Virus record (IMG/VR): IMGVR_UViG_3300001782_000005
Location: 186,001 to 250,000 of that record
Length of the DNA stretch: 64,000 nucleotides
Reading direction: 5' to 3' (one strand)
The translations under genes and the position numbers were made by a program. A model generated the notes under the pieces. It was not told the origin of the DNA, searched no databases, and saw only the letters and a program-made list of their open reading frames with translations. Shown in pieces: positions 19,383 through 36,718 of the stretch. Every line of letters begins with the position of its first letter. Positions within the stretch are counted from its first letter, which is position 1.

Positions 19383-19664
19383 ATGGAGTCAGTTTGCTCA
19401 CTTAAAGCAACTGGACTTGATTTAGAAGAAGGTGAATTAATATGTGATACTTGTAATGGTTGGGGAGTTATCCAAAAAAGGAAAGGTGAATGGCCGTATA
19501 CTCAACCATATGTTAGAAGTTACTGGGTCAAGGATTGTGAGAAATGTAATGGAGCAGGAAAACTAGATTGGGTCGAGAATGCTGTAGGTAAGAGGCAAAG
19601 ACCCAAATATGGGAGTGTTTTTAAATATGACAGAGAAACAGGAAAAGTCAAAAGAGTCGATTAA
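19383..19664 (+). CDS. Zinc-finger paralog 3
   Basis: GELICDTCNGWG...CEKCNGAGKLDWVENAVG. Confidence 0.7.
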   Translation: MESVCSLKATGLDLEEGELICDTCNGWGVIQKRKGEWPYTQPYVRSYWVKDCEKCNGAGKLDWVENAVGKRQRPKYGSVFKYDRETGKVKRVD

Positions 19665-20085
19665 GGACGATGCCGCTAGATATTTTGCAGAAAAGATAGC
19701 CGGGTCAAAAAATTATGATAATCCCTTCTACTATTTATGGTCAGAATTCCTTGGAGGTCTTGCTTTAGTATCTTTCAAATTCTGGATTATGTACTTGACA
19801 AATGAAGAAGGGTTTAGAGAAGGTCTTGAAGATAGTCCAAAAGCTATTATAGATGCAGTATTGCAAATGTGGAGGGTAAGAGTTATAAGTGAAATTGATA
19901 AAGAGATGGAAAAGCATGAAGAAATGATGAAAACTCCATACGCAAAAATATTTGGAAATTTAATGACTCCTCCTGATGAAGCACGAAAAGAGATATATAA
20001 AACCATAGAAGAAGTAGAGGCGAAAGCGAGGCAGGCTCTTTATGATGGTATCGTTGTGGCGGTGGATAAAGTTAAAACTGAATGA
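19609..20085 (+). CDS. Hypothetical helical protein
   Basis: ORF within operon. Confidence 0.55.
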   Translation: MGVFLNMTEKQEKSKESIKDDAARYFAEKIAGSKNYDNPFYYLWSEFLGGLALVSFKFWIMYLTNEEGFREGLEDSPKAIIDAVLQMWRVRVISEIDKEMEKHEEMMKTPYAKIFGNLMTPPDEARKEIYKTIEEVEAKARQALYDGIVVAVDKVKTE

Positions 20086-26170: not shown

Positions 26171-27097
26171 ATGTCCGAAAGACTTCAAAAAATACTCGAT
26201 GAATTAACAACTACGATGAATAGTACAATGTTCTGGGGTCCACATGGTTTTAGGCGTCAATCACAAGATGTAATAACTTATTATGACCCTAGAGCAGCTA
26301 CTGGATGGGAAGATTATGCAACTTATACTGCGATTGGACCTATTGTGCCCCCTACAACTGCAATTGGTAGTACAATACCAGTAGAAGGTTATGGTCTGAC
26401 AAATAAAAAAGTTGAAGAACAAGAAGAGGAAGAAAAGGAGCATGAAAAATTAGCAACTGAGCAACCCGTTCCTTTACAGCAGCCTCCTTCTGTTGGTGAG
26501 TTTGATGAAGATACTGAGGATAAAGAAAAGGAAGAAAAGATAAAAAAGGTTGATATATTACCAAGAAAGATAAGTGAACAACCCGAAGAAGAGGAAGAAC
26601 CTGTCGAAGAACCTGCGGGTGGTGAAGAAGATATACCAGGTATGCCGGGAGAAGAGATGCCAGGTGAAGAAGAAGGTATACCGGGTATGCCAGGTATACC
26701 AGGTATGCCAGGTGAGGAAGATACAGGACCTGAAACACCAGGAGAAGTTGGTCGTATTTATGAATTAAAGAAGATATATGCGAGATTAATTTCTCTTGAT
26801 CATCATCTGTCTTCATCTACTGATGAAGTTCTCCTAAAGTTACGTCATATAGTATCTCAATCAATTGAAGTCTTCCGAGTTATGATTGCAAATGTTGATT
26901 TGTTTAAGGATAAGATGAATAGTATAATTGTTCTATATTATGAATTTCTTGAGAGAGTATATACTCTACTAAAGAAATATTATAATGCAAAGACTAAAGA
27001 GGAGAGACGGGATGCCAAGATTGAGGATAAACCAGAGAGGGTTTCTCCTGAATACGGGCCACAGTCAAGTGAGAACCCCCTGTATAATAGAGCTTAA
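26171..27097 (+). CDS. Acidic Pro/Gly-rich hypothetical head-module protein
   Basis: IPGMPG repeats, helical C-terminus. Confidence 0.6.
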   Translation: MSERLQKILDELTTTMNSTMFWGPHGFRRQSQDVITYYDPRAATGWEDYATYTAIGPIVPPTTAIGSTIPVEGYGLTNKKVEEQEEEEKEHEKLATEQPVPLQQPPSVGEFDEDTEDKEKEEKIKKVDILPRKISEQPEEEEEPVEEPAGGEEDIPGMPGEEMPGEEEGIPGMPGIPGMPGEEDTGPETPGEVGRIYELKKIYARLISLDHHLSSSTDEVLLKLRHIVSQSIEVFRVMIANVDLFKDKMNSIIVLYYEFLERVYTLLKKYYNAKTKEERRDAKIEDKPERVSPEYGPQSSENPLYNRA

Positions 27098-28010
27098 TGA
27101 TTTTAACCGAGATTTAATTTTTAATCAATTGAGATCAGCAGGTATTTCAAATTATATTATTGATATTCCTGTGGTAATTCAAAGACCTGGCGAGAAAAAA
27201 AGAACACAGTCATTTCCATACTCTCTCAATTATAAACCAGACCCTCTTGACATGAGAGATTATAGAATTTCTAAACTTATTGATAAACCACTCTCTTATT
27301 CTCTATCCGTAGATCACACAAGTAAAATGTCTCCAGTAAAAGATCAAGGTCAAAAAGGTTCTTGCGTTGGTTTTGCAGTTGTTGCGATGAAAGAATGGCA
27401 AGAACAAAAAGAACATATTAATGAAATAATAAAGGGAAAGGTATATAGAAGGAAAGCTAAACACTACGATTTATCAGAGCAATGGTTATATCATAAGACA
27501 AAAGAAATTGATGCTTGGCCAAACCAAGAGGGTACAAGTTTTAGATATGCTCTTAAGATTCTTCAAAAAATGGGAGTTCCGCCTGAAAAAGCATGGCCAT
27601 ATAGTGATAGAACTTTAGGTAGTCCAAAAAGGTGGGCTAAAATGATTGCCCTTTGGACTATGTGTGGTCACTATTATAGACTAGAAGGCATAAAGCAGAT
27701 TGAATGGACATTGAGTAATATTGGACCATGTGTTGCTGGGATTGGTTGCTATGAAGAGATATTCTTCGTTGGTAATGATGGATATGTGCCATATCCAGCA
27801 AGATCAGATATCCTCTATGGTGGTCATGCCATATGTCTCGTTGGTTATGATTCTAAAAAGAAATTAGTTAAATTTAAGAATTCATGGGGAACAAATTGGG
27901 GAGAAAAGGGTTACGGTTATCTCTCTTATGATTATATCAATGATTTCTGTTGGGATGCTTGGGCGGTAAAAGATATTAATGTTACAAAGGAGATGCTTAA
28001 AAGCAAATAA
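26985..28010 (+). CDS. Papain-family (C1) cysteine peptidase; true start uncertain
   Basis: PVKDQGQKGSCVGFA, GGHAICLVGY, KNSWGTNWGEKGY. Confidence 0.9.
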   Translation: MQRLKRRDGMPRLRINQRGFLLNTGHSQVRTPCIIELNDFNRDLIFNQLRSAGISNYIIDIPVVIQRPGEKKRTQSFPYSLNYKPDPLDMRDYRISKLIDKPLSYSLSVDHTSKMSPVKDQGQKGSCVGFAVVAMKEWQEQKEHINEIIKGKVYRRKAKHYDLSEQWLYHKTKEIDAWPNQEGTSFRYALKILQKMGVPPEKAWPYSDRTLGSPKRWAKMIALWTMCGHYYRLEGIKQIEWTLSNIGPCVAGIGCYEEIFFVGNDGYVPYPARSDILYGGHAICLVGYDSKKKLVKFKNSWGTNWGEKGYGYLSYDYINDFCWDAWAVKDINVTKEMLKSK

Positions 28011-28021
28011 GAGGTGCTGCT

Positions 28022-28690
28022 ATGTCACACTTTTTTATTGAAAGTGCAATTATGCAAGAAGCTAAGTTAATGAGAGAAGAACCGGGTAAAGCAATATTTC
28101 GTATGGTTCTTCAAACTGCCGATCAAGTCAACCAGAATAAGAGGTTATATCCACAAGCTGTCCTAGCTGAGGGAATGAAAGAAGTTGAGAATCGTATGAG
28201 TCGACGCGCATTTTTGGGCGAGTTAGATCACCCGGTTCCTACAGGAAATCAGTTTGATGAAGTCAGACAAACAACAGTTATGCTAAAAGAGGTATCTCAT
28301 CTAATTCGTGATTATGATTGGAGGGGGAAGCAACTAATAGGAGAATTAGAGACGACCAATACTCCCAACGGAGCAATCCTTTTAGGTCTATTAAAAGATC
28401 GTTCTGGTATTGGAATGAGTATGAGGGGAATGGCATCCTTAAAAAGGATGAGAGAATATAATGAGGTTGAAGGTCCGTTAATGATCATTACTTATGACTC
28501 CGTATCCCTACCTAGTCATTCATCTGCAGTAGTTGACTTTAAAGAGATGAAGTTTGAGAATAAATCTTTGTTAATTGAAAACTGTGATTGTGAAACTGTC
28601 TGTACAGCAGACGGTACTTGTTATTTAGCAAATTATTTTGATAAATTAGTTGAGACTCGAATGATTCAATTCTTCAAGACTTGGGTATAA
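28022..28690 (+). CDS. Prohead core protease (T4 gp21-like)
   Basis: NQNKRLYP, GELDHP, SHLI, GMSMRG, ITYDSVSLPS. Confidence 0.88.
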   Translation: MSHFFIESAIMQEAKLMREEPGKAIFRMVLQTADQVNQNKRLYPQAVLAEGMKEVENRMSRRAFLGELDHPVPTGNQFDEVRQTTVMLKEVSHLIRDYDWRGKQLIGELETTNTPNGAILLGLLKDRSGIGMSMRGMASLKRMREYNEVEGPLMIITYDSVSLPSHSSAVVDFKEMKFENKSLLIENCDCETVCTADGTCYLANYFDKLVETRMIQFFKTWV

Positions 28691-32051: not shown

Positions 32052-32072
32052 CAGGAGGTTTTTTATATAACC

Positions 32073-32112
32073 AAAAAAAAGACCTCAAGTATATTAATAA
32101 CTTGGGGTCTTT
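32073..32112 (-). terminator. Terminator downstream of tasA
   Basis: AAGACCCCAAGT/ACTTGAGGTCTT stem followed by T8 on - strand. Confidence 0.7.
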
Positions 32113-32134: not shown

Positions 32135-33298
32135 TCACCTAGAATGTACGATACCCAATTTTTCTTCTTCATATGGAGCGGATATCGGTAGTCCTTCTAA
32201 CTCCCTCCACTTCCTCCAGAAGTCAAGAAGAAATATTTTGAGCATATAGCGAATACTCATATTCTTTATATGGTTATCGCTTATGATATTACTCAAGACA
32301 AACTTCTTTGCTTCTTTTAGAGTTGGTTGTTTTTTCTGTTTTGCCAACCATTTCTTACATAACTCATATTTCTCAGAGTTAATGGTCAGGGTTCCCTCAG
32401 AATCATGGGGGTCTTTTTTATAGAGGATTTGTTTTTGCCTTAGAGCTCTTATGAAGAACTCCCTTCTTCCCTGCATTCTAGTTCTGTAATCATAGAAAAT
32501 AGGTGAATAAATATTATCTTGCTTACGAAGGAAACTGGTTGCCAGGACATGGAGTTTTGTTTTTAGGTATGGGGAATATGTTATACTCTTCTTTGTTTTG
32601 GTTTTACCAGACTTATCTGTATATTCCCTATCGACTAAGTGGTGAGATTTCTTACTTCTACCTTCTCCTCTGACAACCTCTTCACCTTCGATCTCATCTA
32701 GAGTCCATACCACGTCAAGACCAGCATAACTCCAAAATGCGGTGACATGGTTTGCCCTATGAGGATCAAGTTCGCTCACAAGAACGCCGCCCATTGTAGG
32801 ACCAACTCCTTCAAGTCCTTTCAGGAATTCTGTCCAGATTGGAAACTCATCAAGAAATTTCTCAATTTGCTTATTGATCTTGTACTCCTGTTTGACAAGA
32901 GATATATAGGTGTCAACAAATATAAACATAATTTCACCAGAGATTATACCAGGGTGTGCATCCTTCATAATCTTAGGAATCTCTTTCATGTTTATCACAA
33001 CACCGTCAGTGATTCTCTTGTATTCTCTAGAGATAAGTCCCATTAACTCTTTTGGGAGACCATAAAGACCTTCTTTCTTTTCTCCCGGTTTTAGTCCAAA
33101 GCGACGATATAGATTACCAAGAATCCTATTTCCCATCCTGATCCTATCCCTCTGAATATCGTCATATCCTCTAATTAATCCTCTCAATTCAATCTTTGGA
33201 CTCCACAACTCAGGTACAGGTTGCACAGGTATGCTAAAACCTCTGCCCTTGAAAACATCTGCGATTGATTTTATAGGTTCTAAAACTTCCTTAGCCAT
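32135..33298 (-). CDS. tasA: TasA-like Nop/IS110-related RNA-binding protein without recognisable nuclease domain
   Basis: Coiled coil LRGLIRGYDDIQRDRIRMGNR, then IWTEFLKGLEGVGPTMGG, AFWSYAGL, YSPYLKTKL, RYMLKIFLLD; no N-terminal DEDD RuvC, no IS110 SG catalytic loop, no HNH motif seen; abuts dual-repeat array. Confidence 0.8.
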   Translation of the reverse strand: MAKEVLEPIKSIADVFKGRGFSIPVQPVPELWSPKIELRGLIRGYDDIQRDRIRMGNRILGNLYRRFGLKPGEKKEGLYGLPKELMGLISREYKRITDGVVINMKEIPKIMKDAHPGIISGEIMFIFVDTYISLVKQEYKINKQIEKFLDEFPIWTEFLKGLEGVGPTMGGVLVSELDPHRANHVTAFWSYAGLDVVWTLDEIEGEEVVRGEGRSKKSHHLVDREYTDKSGKTKTKKSITYSPYLKTKLHVLATSFLRKQDNIYSPIFYDYRTRMQGRREFFIRALRQKQILYKKDPHDSEGTLTINSEKYELCKKWLAKQKKQPTLKEAKKFVLSNIISDNHIKNMSIRYMLKIFLLDFWRKWRELEGLPISAPYEEEKLGIVHSR

Positions 33299-33310
33299 AA
33301 CACTTCTCCT

Positions 33311-34838
33311 TGGTTCACTATATATATATGGGATTCTTTAATTCGATGGTTCACTCTACGTGCCGGTACGTCTCGATTCTTTGGAATCGGAAACACGCTT
33401 CTCTTGGTACACTACAATTTATTGATTTTTCTTATTCCTTGGTACACTTTTTCTTCTAGATTTTTTAAGAGATATAGGTTCACTCATGTTCGTTGGATAC
33501 TGCGGACTTCTGGTTCACTCCGGATGTTTGAATTTTATCAAATGATGGTTCACTGCCAACAAATGGTTTTTCCTTGCCAATACGGTTCACTTTTGAGTTC
33601 TGATTTTTTTGTGCTTGAAGGTCCACTTTATAGAAATGGGTTGCTGTAATTACATGGTTTACTAACACCCACAGGATTTCTCCCAATTCTAGGTTCACTT
33701 TTTTCTTCGGAATATTCTCCCCCACCTGGTTCACTTATCGTCTTAGGTTGTTTATCCATTCCGGGTTCACTCGGCAATTGGGTTTTTACTACGTAACTTG
33801 GTCCACTCCAACGCGCTGGGTTTCTGCGAGAGGACGGTTCACTCTTTTTTCAGGTTAATCTCCCCCACTTGGTTCACTCAAATTTTTGGGTTTCTGACAT
33901 TTTATGGTCCACTCCGTGTCGCTGGATTCCTCTGCTCCCTGTTGGTTCACTATTCAAAAATTGGTTTTTTTCCTTAGATTGGTTCACTCCGGCGCACTGG
34001 GTTTCTGTTGCTGGGTGGTTCACTTGGTGAATGTGAATTATTACAGGGGAATGGTCCACTTTATCATATTAGATTTTTTTCGTCGTTGGTTCACTTTGAA
34101 AAATGGGTTTGCATGACTTTTTGGGTTCACTCAGTCATCATGAATAACTGCCTTCAACTGGTTCACTGCAGCTCCCAGGTTTTCTCCGGGCTTATTGGTT
34201 CACTGGACTATAATGGTTTAGCTGTAGACTTTGGTTCACTTTCATGTACGGGATTTTCTAGCCAACGTAGGTACACTCCTTGCATCGGTTACCTGATATG
34301 CTATGGTTCACTTAACAATGATGATTTTTTGTGTCTTTATCTGGTTCACTTTCCAACGATGGGTTACTTCGCCAAAACGGTCCACTCAAAAATCCTGGTC
34401 TTCTGGCCTCGCTTGGTTCACACTAATTTCGGATTGGTACACTCTAAGGTGCCCTGCACCGACTGGTTTTTTACACTTTCCTTGAATGGTTTTCTCGCCC
34501 AGACCGGTTCATTCCCGTTTTCTGGTTATTATCCTCACTTCTGATTCACTCGCCACGTCTGAGTTTTTTGATCACTACTGGTTCACTTTCGTCATTTGAT
34601 TTCTGCTCAATTTTGGTTCACTTAAGATTCTTAGATACTTCTTTATCTTGGTTCACTAGACTGATTGGATTAATTGTACCACAGGTTCACTCGGCGGGTA
34701 TGAATTTTTCTGGATGCATGGTTCACTCATTCTGTTTAGATACTGATAAAGTTAGGTTCACTGAGGTTAGGAGGGTTCCTATTTCTCTCCTTTGGTTCAC
34801 TCTCTCGCTCAGGTAATCTGTTTCACGATGGTTCACTT
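33311..34838 (-). repeat. TIGR-type dual-repeat guide RNA array, about 42 edge repeats and ~36-nt units
   Basis: - strand unit = AGTGAACCA + ~9 nt spacer A + AGAAACCCA-like loop repeat + ~9 nt spacer B; e.g. + strand 33980 TGGTTCACT-CCGGCGCAC-TGGGTTTCT-GTTGCTGGG-TGGTTCACT 34024. Confidence 0.88.
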
Positions 34839-34854
34839 TGCAGAATAAATTACT

Positions 34855-34887
34855 AAAAAAAAGTACTCATAACGAGTACCTTTTTTT
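34855..34887. terminator. Bidirectional hairpin between tRNA-like RNA and array
   Basis: A8-GTACTC-ATAAC-GAGTAC-C-T7. Confidence 0.7.
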
Positions 34888-34895
34888 CTAAAGGG

Positions 34896-35038
34896 TGGTA
34901 GGGGGTGGGAATCGAACCCAAAGACGGTATTGGCAGTTGAAAGGAGGAAAGACCGCCAACTTTGGAAAAGAGTCCTCCCGACCGTCTTGGATGGTGGTAG
35001 AACAACCATCCAGCATTCCGGTTGCCATTCCCCCTACC
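34896..35038 (-). ncRNA. tRNA-like RNA with 9-bp acceptor, 4-bp T-stem and very long branched variable arm
   Basis: GGTAGGGGG/CCCCCTACC-A, TGGG-TTCGATT-CCCA T-arm, GGATGG/CCATCC arm, AGACGGT/ACCGTCT variable stem. Confidence 0.7.
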
Positions 35039-35076
35039 ATTAGAGTTTCCTGTGTATCTCTCATATGCGCCTCTCT

Positions 35077-36013: not shown

Positions 36014-36718
36014 ATGAAATATCCCGAATTTAGCGAGAAGGGTGAAGTAATTTGTCAAGAGTGTGGAGGAGCCTACAAAGTATTAACTGGATCCCACACT
36101 CGGAGAAAACACAACATGTCTATTGATGAATATAAGGCGAAATATCCTGATGCACCAACTTCTGGAAAGATGTTCTCCTTAACAATGTCACAGGTACAAT
36201 CTAAACCTGAGATTTTCAAAGAGAAACCTGTTGAAGTTGATTTAAACCAAACCGGTGAAGACGACGTAATTACTGACGACGAAGTATTAGATGATGAGCA
36301 TGCCCCGACAATTGAAGAAATTCAAGAAAAACTTCAAGATACAGATCTAAGCGATCTCTTCCAAAGTGATGAAGTTAAGGATCCTGAACCATATAATGTT
36401 GAGGATGAAGATGTTCGAAGTCCAAGAGATAAAATTCAAATTCTCAAATTTTTGAGACAGAAGTATCCCTTTATTCAGAACAACTATCTGATAAAGAAAT
36501 TCCTCATGACAAATCATCTTGAATATGAATTTATCACAGATATGGCTGACCCTATAAATAAGATCGACTTTGAATTCCCAAATGCCTTTTGGCACAACAG
36601 GATGGCCTTTGAAGATCCTCGTAGAAATGAAAAATTGAAACGAGATGGTTGGAAGATTATCACTGTCAACTCAAGGGTTCCAAAGGTTAGTGAGGTTCAG
36701 AAACTAATTTCCAAATAA
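36014..36718 (+). CDS. MucR/Ros-like zinc finger plus Vsr/DUF559-like endonuclease domain
   Basis: [27 protein letters not shown]; C-terminal FWH...D..R...[10 protein letters not shown]; class-2 motif at 35973-35986. Confidence 0.55.

Follow-up and report, generated by a model that had tools for sequence, protein, structure and literature searches.

We identify, in a 64,000-nucleotide stretch of viral DNA (the window; positions 186,001 to 250,000 of IMG/VR record IMGVR_UViG_3300001782_000005), a locus that is, with a probability we put at about 80%, a genuine dual-repeat TIGR-TasA system, that is, a multiplexed system that binds DNA under RNA guidance (a repressor). The TIGR-Tas class, described only recently, comprises compact RNA-guided DNA-targeting systems that are free of a protospacer-adjacent motif (PAM-free). 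The assignment is based on features that are seen directly: the anatomy of the array, the family membership of the adjoining protein, its lack of a nuclease domain, a Tyr/His dyad, the phage context and the retention of spacers among relatives. The original prediction, made from the letters alone, had matched the locus to the TIGR arrays and nuclease-less TasA of Faure et al., and array anatomy, match to the TIGR_Tas_endo family, predicted structure, dyad and context all agree with it. The two components are:

33311–34837, minus strand: dual-repeat TIGR array with 42 edge repeats AGTGAACC(A), 39 regular units of 34–39 nt and two irregular elements
32135–33298, minus strand: tasA, encoding 387 amino acids, with a predicted coiled coil, a Nop domain, a Y376/H385 dyad and no nuclease domain

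With up to one mismatch allowed, AGTGAACC occurs 42 times between 33312 and 34837, always on the minus strand, and consecutive copies are mostly 34–39 nt apart (period ∼ 36 nt, modal unit 36 nt). The whole window contains 86 such matches against 44 expected, an excess that is due to the array cluster. Per-position information content, computed on the 18 units of exactly 36 nt, resolves the unit into four parts. Positions 1–8 (∼ 2 bits each) form the nearly invariant edge repeat AGTGAACC, followed by a position 9 that is mostly A; positions 10–18 (spacer A) and 28–36 (spacer B) carry ∼ 0 bits; positions 19–27 form the loop repeat A-R-A-A-A-N-Y-C-A, in which the C at position 26 is invariant. 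When both spacers are fixed at 9 nt, the loop repeat measures 7–12 nt and absorbs all of the 34–39-nt variation in unit length. Edge and loop alike have an AG as box D and, after a gap of 4 nt, a CCA as box C, the edge reading AG-UGAA-CCA and the loop AG/AA-(A-rich)-YCA. Published detection rules combine box C, a 9-nt spacer, box D and a 4-nt gap, with complementary ends to the edge gap; the ends of the UGAA gap, U and A, are complementary, as these TIGRFinder rules demand. Edges of the AG type also occur in other viral TasA arrays. The copies and the information profile bear out the ∼ 42-repeat array, the 35–38-nt period, the alternation of edge and loop and the ∼ 9-nt spacers of the original prediction, as well as its CCA-type box at the end of each repeat (CCA in the edge, YCA in the loop).

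In full, the array consists of 39 regular units, one hairpin-bearing unit, one 55-nt irregular element and a terminal edge repeat; 38 of the 39 regular units were parsed as guides, the remaining one being the first 36 nt of a 70-nt stretch. Neither Tandem Repeats Finder nor an Rfam scan reported the array, because about half of each unit is variable and there is no curated family for it. CRISPR-Cas was considered and rejected, since the array combines two different repeats of 8–12 nt with 9-nt spacers, versus a single 25–36-nt repeat with spacers of similar size; among the eight neighbouring window ORFs (open reading frames) scanned, none has a Pfam match to a cas family. The spacers are purine-rich (56–60%) and poor in C (13–22%) in all four arrays compared (the window array and those of its relatives), against 47% purine for the same strand of the window. 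More stable hybrids of RNA purines with DNA pyrimidines, or the avoidance of spurious CCA boxes, are possible reasons.

The TasA protein matches NCBIfam TIGR_Tas_endo (NF052498) over the entire profile (positions 1–215 of 215) with 116.5 bits (curated cut-off 100). A sequence search of the PDB returned TasR (9MTY) as the best match (E = 3e-13) and TasH at 1e-5; with the family profile the values are 6e-25 and 2e-18, respectively, and IS621 was not reached. An AlphaFold2 model built from 120 relatives has a predicted local distance difference test score (pLDDT) of 88.7 and a predicted TM-score (pTM) of 0.84. When this model was submitted to Foldseek, the top 10 matches were all chains of TasR (9mty) or TasH with probability 1.0, followed by the IS621 and ISCro4 recombinases and then, more weakly, by archaeal Nop5, an order that mirrors the published relationships. 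The Nop/IS110-C-terminal part of the architecture that the original prediction had given the 387-residue product is upheld both by the family score and by this structural ranking against Tas, IS110 and Nop5. In the monomer model, long helices predicted at residues 34–66 and 122–149 occupy the position of the Tas coiled coil.

The Nop core begins at about residue 38–43 and residues 1–37 hold one short helix. There is consequently no room for an N-terminal RuvC or HNH domain, which makes the protein a TasA, and Pfam detects neither domain in the 387 residues; the predicted absence of a DEDD RuvC and of an HNH domain therefore stands. The C-terminal motif P-Y-x-E-x-K-L-G-x-x-H is conserved across the relatives. 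Its tyrosine, Y376, does not vary in an alignment of 24 sequences, and its histidine, H385, is retained there in at least 90%; in an alignment of 120 relatives, both residues reach at least 90% conservation. Y376, E379, K380 and R365 align with Y289, E292, K293 and R278 of SpTasH, which have been shown to be necessary for processing of the precursor of the guide RNA (pre-tigRNA).

Most relatives of the protein measure 285–325 residues versus 387 here. Three additions, shared with its closest relatives P0002, P0004 and P0007, are found in this TasA: ∼ 30 extra residues at the N-terminus, a 13-residue extension of the wedge hairpin (residues 197–209) and a helical insertion of ∼ 55 residues (approximately 280–335) near the ‘insertion 2’ site. 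Xu et al. describe this site as longer in dual-repeat Tas proteins and suggest that it acts as a molecular ruler. The most distant relative with the ∼ 55-residue insertion is P0007 (46% identity), encoded on contig L016; the 4.1 kb of that contig, which extend ∼ 1.1 kb upstream of the gene and 1.8 kb beyond it, contain no recognizable array.

The element belongs to an uncultured phage of ∼ 277 kb with T4-like head genes. Window genes include a gp23-like major head protein, a T4-type portal, an S77 prohead protease, a family-B-like DNA polymerase and a DnaB helicase, and contigs of up to 277 kb, both metagenomic ones and IMG/VR viral ones, carry the identical TasA. The head, portal, protease and replication genes together with these contigs confirm that the system is phage-encoded, as had been proposed. 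Its kinship with cultured phages is remote, the capsid protein being at most 26% identical to that of any of them.

In all the assembled contigs of this phage that cover the array, four completely and two partially, its sequence is the same at every base. Three relatives whose TasA proteins are 75–84% identical carry longer arrays (∼ 45–57 units) at the same syntenic place. The arrays of contigs L004 and L005, which encode identical TasA proteins, differ by a clean indel of exactly two units; one of these units is homologous to window guide 9. This shows recent array dynamics at the level of units. Comparison of the window array with that of L004 shows two classes of guide: 11 of 38 (∼ 30%) have a counterpart with at most 3 differences in 18 positions, the rest are unrecognizable, and there are hardly any intermediates. 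Third codon positions of tasA are 59% identical between the same two phages; given that divergence, neutral drift would leave ∼ 1 of 38 guides at three or fewer differences, and spacer shuffles left none. Within homologous units the spacers differ at 7.1% of positions and loops of equal length at 16.8% (2.4-fold, Fisher p = 1e-7), a ratio that is inflated because homologous guides were identified through spacer similarity. The length of the loop differs in 25 of 69 homologous unit pairs. Differences between spacers cluster at their ends (A8–9, B1–2 and B9). At the level of sequence comparison these patterns point to turnover of cassettes combined with purifying selection on a core of guides, which is what functional guides with conserved targets would show. 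Recombination between arrays would yield the same pattern of spacer conservation. The guides that are conserved far beyond the neutral expectation are accordingly the first candidates for target identification.

The similarity to IS110 raises the question of whether the locus is an IS110-type mobile element, or the decayed remnant of one, with repeats that do not act as guides. The sole Pfam match is Transposase_20 (PF02371) at 26.4 bits, and ‘transposase’ is also the label both of the PHROGs family and of the only homologue in a cultured phage, a protein of Ralstonia phage phiRSL1 with 31% identity. The Pfam match is, however, limited to positions 3–42 of the 87 in the profile; it ends just after YAGLDV, and a nearly invariant G-x-G-R-S lies slightly downstream in TasA relatives. 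The absence of the IS110 catalytic SG loop, stated in the original prediction, is accordingly tentative. The NCBIfam IS110 model (NF033542) scores 30.6 bits against a cut-off of 140 and is matched at positions 122–261 only. IS110 elements have a DEDD RuvC domain, which this protein lacks, a catalytic serine and a single bridge RNA instead of an array, and they are mobile, whereas the present locus occupies the same syntenic position in diverged phages, with an intact ORF, an array identical in all covering assemblies and spacers that are conserved more than loops. The mobile-element reading is thus already contradicted, and we regard it as hardly tenable. What the two systems do share is a homologous RNA-binding C-terminal domain (IS621, PDB 8WT6, Foldseek E ∼ 2e-3; PF02371) and a two-part guide for both strands of the DNA, as known from IS621 and predicted here.

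The closest known systems are the dual-repeat TIGR-TasA loci described in PMC12045711. With FpTasA of Flavonifractor plautii, compared here by its published description, the protein shares the form of a solo Nop protein with a coiled coil, the latter being predicted here. Common to the window locus and the dual-repeat loci in general are edge and loop repeats with two 9-nt spacers, units of ∼ 36 nt, a CCA box C, the absence of adaptation genes and the occurrence in phages. The window locus differs in the length of its protein (387 residues against ∼ 285–325 in most relatives, owing to the N-terminal, wedge and ∼ 55-residue additions), in the placement of the array upstream of tasA and abutting its ribosome-binding site, in its loops of 7–12 nt and in its ∼ 40 units, compared with ‘most often 5 to 15’ (PMC12045711). 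A later catalogue holds 20,096 tas loci and 65,635 tigRNAs in 4,126 dual-repeat arrays, on average ∼ 16 per array. A crude count on 76 other viral TasA loci gave a median of ∼ 12 units and a maximum of 30, and the same method gives 27 for the present array of 42. Together with the catalogue average, these counts place the clade at the long end of the range, not in a different kind.

Among Tas proteins of known structure, TaTasR (PDB 9MTY) is the best match by both sequence and structure and shares the Nop domain and, as predicted for the window locus, the coiled coil and 36-nt dual-repeat tigRNAs; it differs by an N-terminal RuvC domain of ∼ 118 residues, absent here, and by a UG box D where both repeats of the window array have AG. 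SpTasH of Salicola phage CGphi29 (PDB 9W03, 9W04, 21KL) has the same Nop fold (Foldseek probability 1.0) and a matching C-terminal sequence; in contrast to the present TasA it carries an N-terminal HNH nuclease and cuts DNA, and its H296 follows directly after the KLG motif, whereas H385 stands two residues later. Archaeal box C/D sRNP Nop5 (PDB 3PLA) is related through a distant Nop fold and a coiled-coil dimer of the kind predicted here. It differs in that the structural match is weak (E ∼ 0.6), in its L7Ae and fibrillarin partners, which have no counterpart here, and in its target, which is RNA instead of DNA. Stem-loop MbTasA and PlTasA are, like the present protein, Tas proteins without a nuclease; they have demonstrated DNA-binding and repression activity, which is the activity proposed here, but the window locus is of the dual-repeat kind and retains the Y/H loop.

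Work on these relatives suggests how the locus would operate. Processing to 36-nt tigRNAs has been reported, with the Y/H dyad as the processing site; a coiled-coil dimer holds one tigRNA, which pairs in tandem with both DNA strands; and nuclease-less TasA shows RNA-guided DNA binding and reversible transcriptional repression (10.64898/2026.09.09.750476, 10.64898/2026.08.11.744272). The statement of the original prediction that TasA function is largely open has been overtaken by these 2026 preprints. By analogy, we infer processing, dimerization, two-strand targeting and repression at the window locus. The array and tasA share one strand, are flanked by two terminator-like hairpins and probably form a single transcription unit. 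TasA would dimerize via its coiled coil, and in both kinds of repeat, edge and loop, its Nop domains would recognize the CCA or YCA of box C and the AG of box D. The Tyr376/His385 dyad would then cut within each edge repeat and release ∼ 39 tigRNAs of ∼ 36 nt. In the resulting ribonucleoprotein (RNP), the two 9-nt spacers, A and B, are predicted to pair with opposite strands of an 18-bp site; if the homology to IS621 holds, the top strand would read as spacer A and then spacer B in reverse complement. With no nuclease domain, such a complex may bind without cutting and block transcription (or replication) sterically, in a ‘CRISPRi-like’, multiplexed manner. Its targets would lie outside the 64-kb window, most likely on the host chromosome or on competing mobile elements; that they are host defence or competitor genes, as the original prediction had it, is conjecture.

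Sites were searched in the arrangement expected from the geometry of the IS621 bridge RNA (spacer A plus the reverse complement of spacer B) and in the opposite arrangement. The search for self-targets in the window covered both contiguous geometries, gaps of 0–3 nt, up to 3 mismatches and a 13-nt core, with shuffled controls. A single hit, at 20065–20084 on the plus strand and close to the 3′ terminus of the ORF 19609–20085, has the reverse complement of spacer A of guide 3, 2 nt and then spacer B, with one mismatch. We judge it to be probably a chance match because its estimated p is ∼ 0.03 over all configurations and its geometry is unlike that of a contiguous 18-bp target. An exact 18-mer scan of IMG/VR was made with four conserved guides, two of which gave 16 and 24 matches; these fall into ∼ 5 and 11 unrelated families and are at chance level for 8-fold degenerate patterns. 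In GTDB, with one genome per species, 12 of the 37 matches to guide 16 are in one enoyl-CoA hydratase gene of Acidobacteriota-like metagenome-assembled genomes with 52–56% GC, and were not counted as evidence. Guides of 18 nt have been remarked in print to give many false matches. The predicted form of the target, spacer A plus the reverse complement of spacer B, agrees with IS621 in its geometry; the searches yield no target above chance.

Several of the results weigh against the assignment of the locus to a functional DNA-binding TasA system. In the window there is no site with two or fewer mismatches in either contiguous arrangement and no match to the 13-nt core that omits the tolerant end positions. 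The other two conserved guides had no match in the exact IMG/VR scan, and the 37 GTDB matches of guide 16 compare with a rough chance estimate of ∼ 68. Repression has been shown for the stem-loop MbTasA, while the evidence for dual-repeat FpTasA consists of RNA binding and an activation assay with a VPR fusion only. H385 lies two residues beyond the position of SpTasH H296. A terminator-like hairpin stands 17 nt before the first repeat and no promoter was found, and the spacer conservation is subject to the inflation described above.

The same searches bear on whether the guides instead regulate the phage's own genes, the RNPs timing early, middle and late expression or replication. Regulation of the viral life cycle is among the possibilities listed by Xu et al., guides that are common to diverged phages would fit conserved phage sequences as targets, and the mismatch search covered 64 kb of the ∼ 277 kb. 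However, with three mismatches allowed the counts in the window equal those of the shuffled controls, on top of the absence of closer or core matches, and the exact scan of the four guides in IMG/VR, which holds the full 277-kb contig, found no match on the contigs of this phage itself. On balance we consider regulation of the phage's own genes unlikely.

It has also been considered that TasA is a targeting adaptor, whose RNP binds DNA and recruits or positions a nuclease, an integrase or a ParB-like partition protein, rather than serving as a plain roadblock. Faure et al. (PMC12045711) note occasional ParB-like neighbours and speculate that a 180-degree bend in the DNA could help an integrase, and the proteins of this clade carry the extra helical insertion of ∼ 55 residues and the N-terminal extension. 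Yet the neighbouring ORFs scanned (∼ 31.3–38.5 kb) encode no nuclease, integrase, ParB or Cas-like domain, typical TasA loci stand alone, and the insertion site is already known to vary in dual-repeat Tas proteins. An adaptor function is very improbable here.

Returning to the guide-directed repressor, the array contains irregular elements, and it is flanked by signals and a translation junction:

33311–33319, minus strand: last edge repeat, followed directly by the Shine-Dalgarno sequence AGGAG
33306–33310, minus strand: Shine-Dalgarno AGGAG, which takes the place of a ‘spacer A’ behind the last edge repeat and precedes the ATG at 33298 by 7 nt
33356–33413, minus strand: hairpin unit of 58 nt, whose would-be spacers form an outer stem of ∼ 7 bp with one another, enclosing an inner 6-bp hairpin
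34423–34477, minus strand: non-canonical element of 55 nt inside the array, invariant in sequence, unlike the spacers
34855–34887, no strand assigned: terminator-like bidirectional hairpin with U-runs, 17 nt ahead of the first edge repeat
32070–32112, minus strand: hairpin with a U8 run behind it, forming an intrinsic terminator downstream of tasA

The abutment of the last repeat on the AGGAG of the 387-residue gene is as originally described. The same succession of edge, Shine-Dalgarno sequence and ATG is found in relatives, also for an ORF of 90–91 amino acids that is inserted in their arrays (L004:5046–5318, L012 and L013) and starts right after an edge repeat plus AAGGAGG. No Pfam family matches this small ORF, and the window lacks a homologue of it. 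Such junctions suggest a coupling between processing and translation. The hairpin unit has counterparts at L004:4279–4338, L012:4772–4834 and L013:5595–5652, with lengths from 58 to 63 nt, and 5 of its 15 pairs show compensatory changes across the four phages. It may be a signal for processing or punctuation, or a decoy. Copies of the 55-nt element occur once each in L004 and L012 and three times in L013; the edge repeat that comes after it always begins with TGTG. It contains a small GGTGC/GCACC hairpin, and the opposite strand reads as a hairpin plus a T-run. No sigma-70-like promoter precedes the array and no promoter was recognized; TAATTTAT, which is common to the leaders of the relatives, was tried as a motif candidate and is not enriched in the window.

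A more far-reaching version of the guide-directed repressor can be built from these elements: a selected programme of 40–57 guides, some of them a conserved core, by which phages of this jumbo-phage clade take over the host or silence competitors, combined with conserved RNA modules that are not guides, feedback of TasA via the Shine-Dalgarno sequence and a ∼ 55-residue insertion that accepts loops of variable length. If it were true, the conserved modules would be the covarying hairpin unit and the invariant 55-nt element, punctuating the list of guides, and TasA binding or cleavage at the edge/Shine-Dalgarno junction would feed back on the expression of tasA and of the small ORF. We put this forward as speculation that is much more likely to be wrong than right.

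Since the family was described in 2025 (Faure), TasA repression and structures followed in 2026 preprints and the contigs themselves are public, the locus is a long and well-preserved new example and adds no new principle. It is a favourable natural case, with ∼ 40 guides in a near-complete phage of ∼ 277 kb, an array that has been recovered repeatedly in identical form and at least three diverged relatives that permit comparison guide by guide. It could thus help to identify the natural binding sites of a phage TasA.

A tRNA-like structured RNA (∼ 34890–35044, minus strand) is located immediately upstream of the terminator in front of the array. It has a T-arm (GGTTCGATTCC), an acceptor stem of ∼ 10 bp and an extra arm of ∼ 68 nt, scores 22 bits with the Rfam tRNA-Sec model (threshold 47) and has a folding z-score of −3.3. 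ARAGORN called no tRNA anywhere in the window, this RNA included. Relatives carry it at the same position with ∼ 82% identity and compensatory changes.

In the head module, a papain-like Peptidase_C1 gene (26985–28010, plus strand) lies between the portal and major head protein genes and is adjoined by the gene of the S77 prohead protease (28022–28690). About 1.2 kb upstream of the array, the ORF at 36014–36718 (plus strand) encodes a DNA-binding zinc-finger motif of the ROS/MucR type (28.3 bits, cut-off 25.4) and is found in the same place in the relatives.

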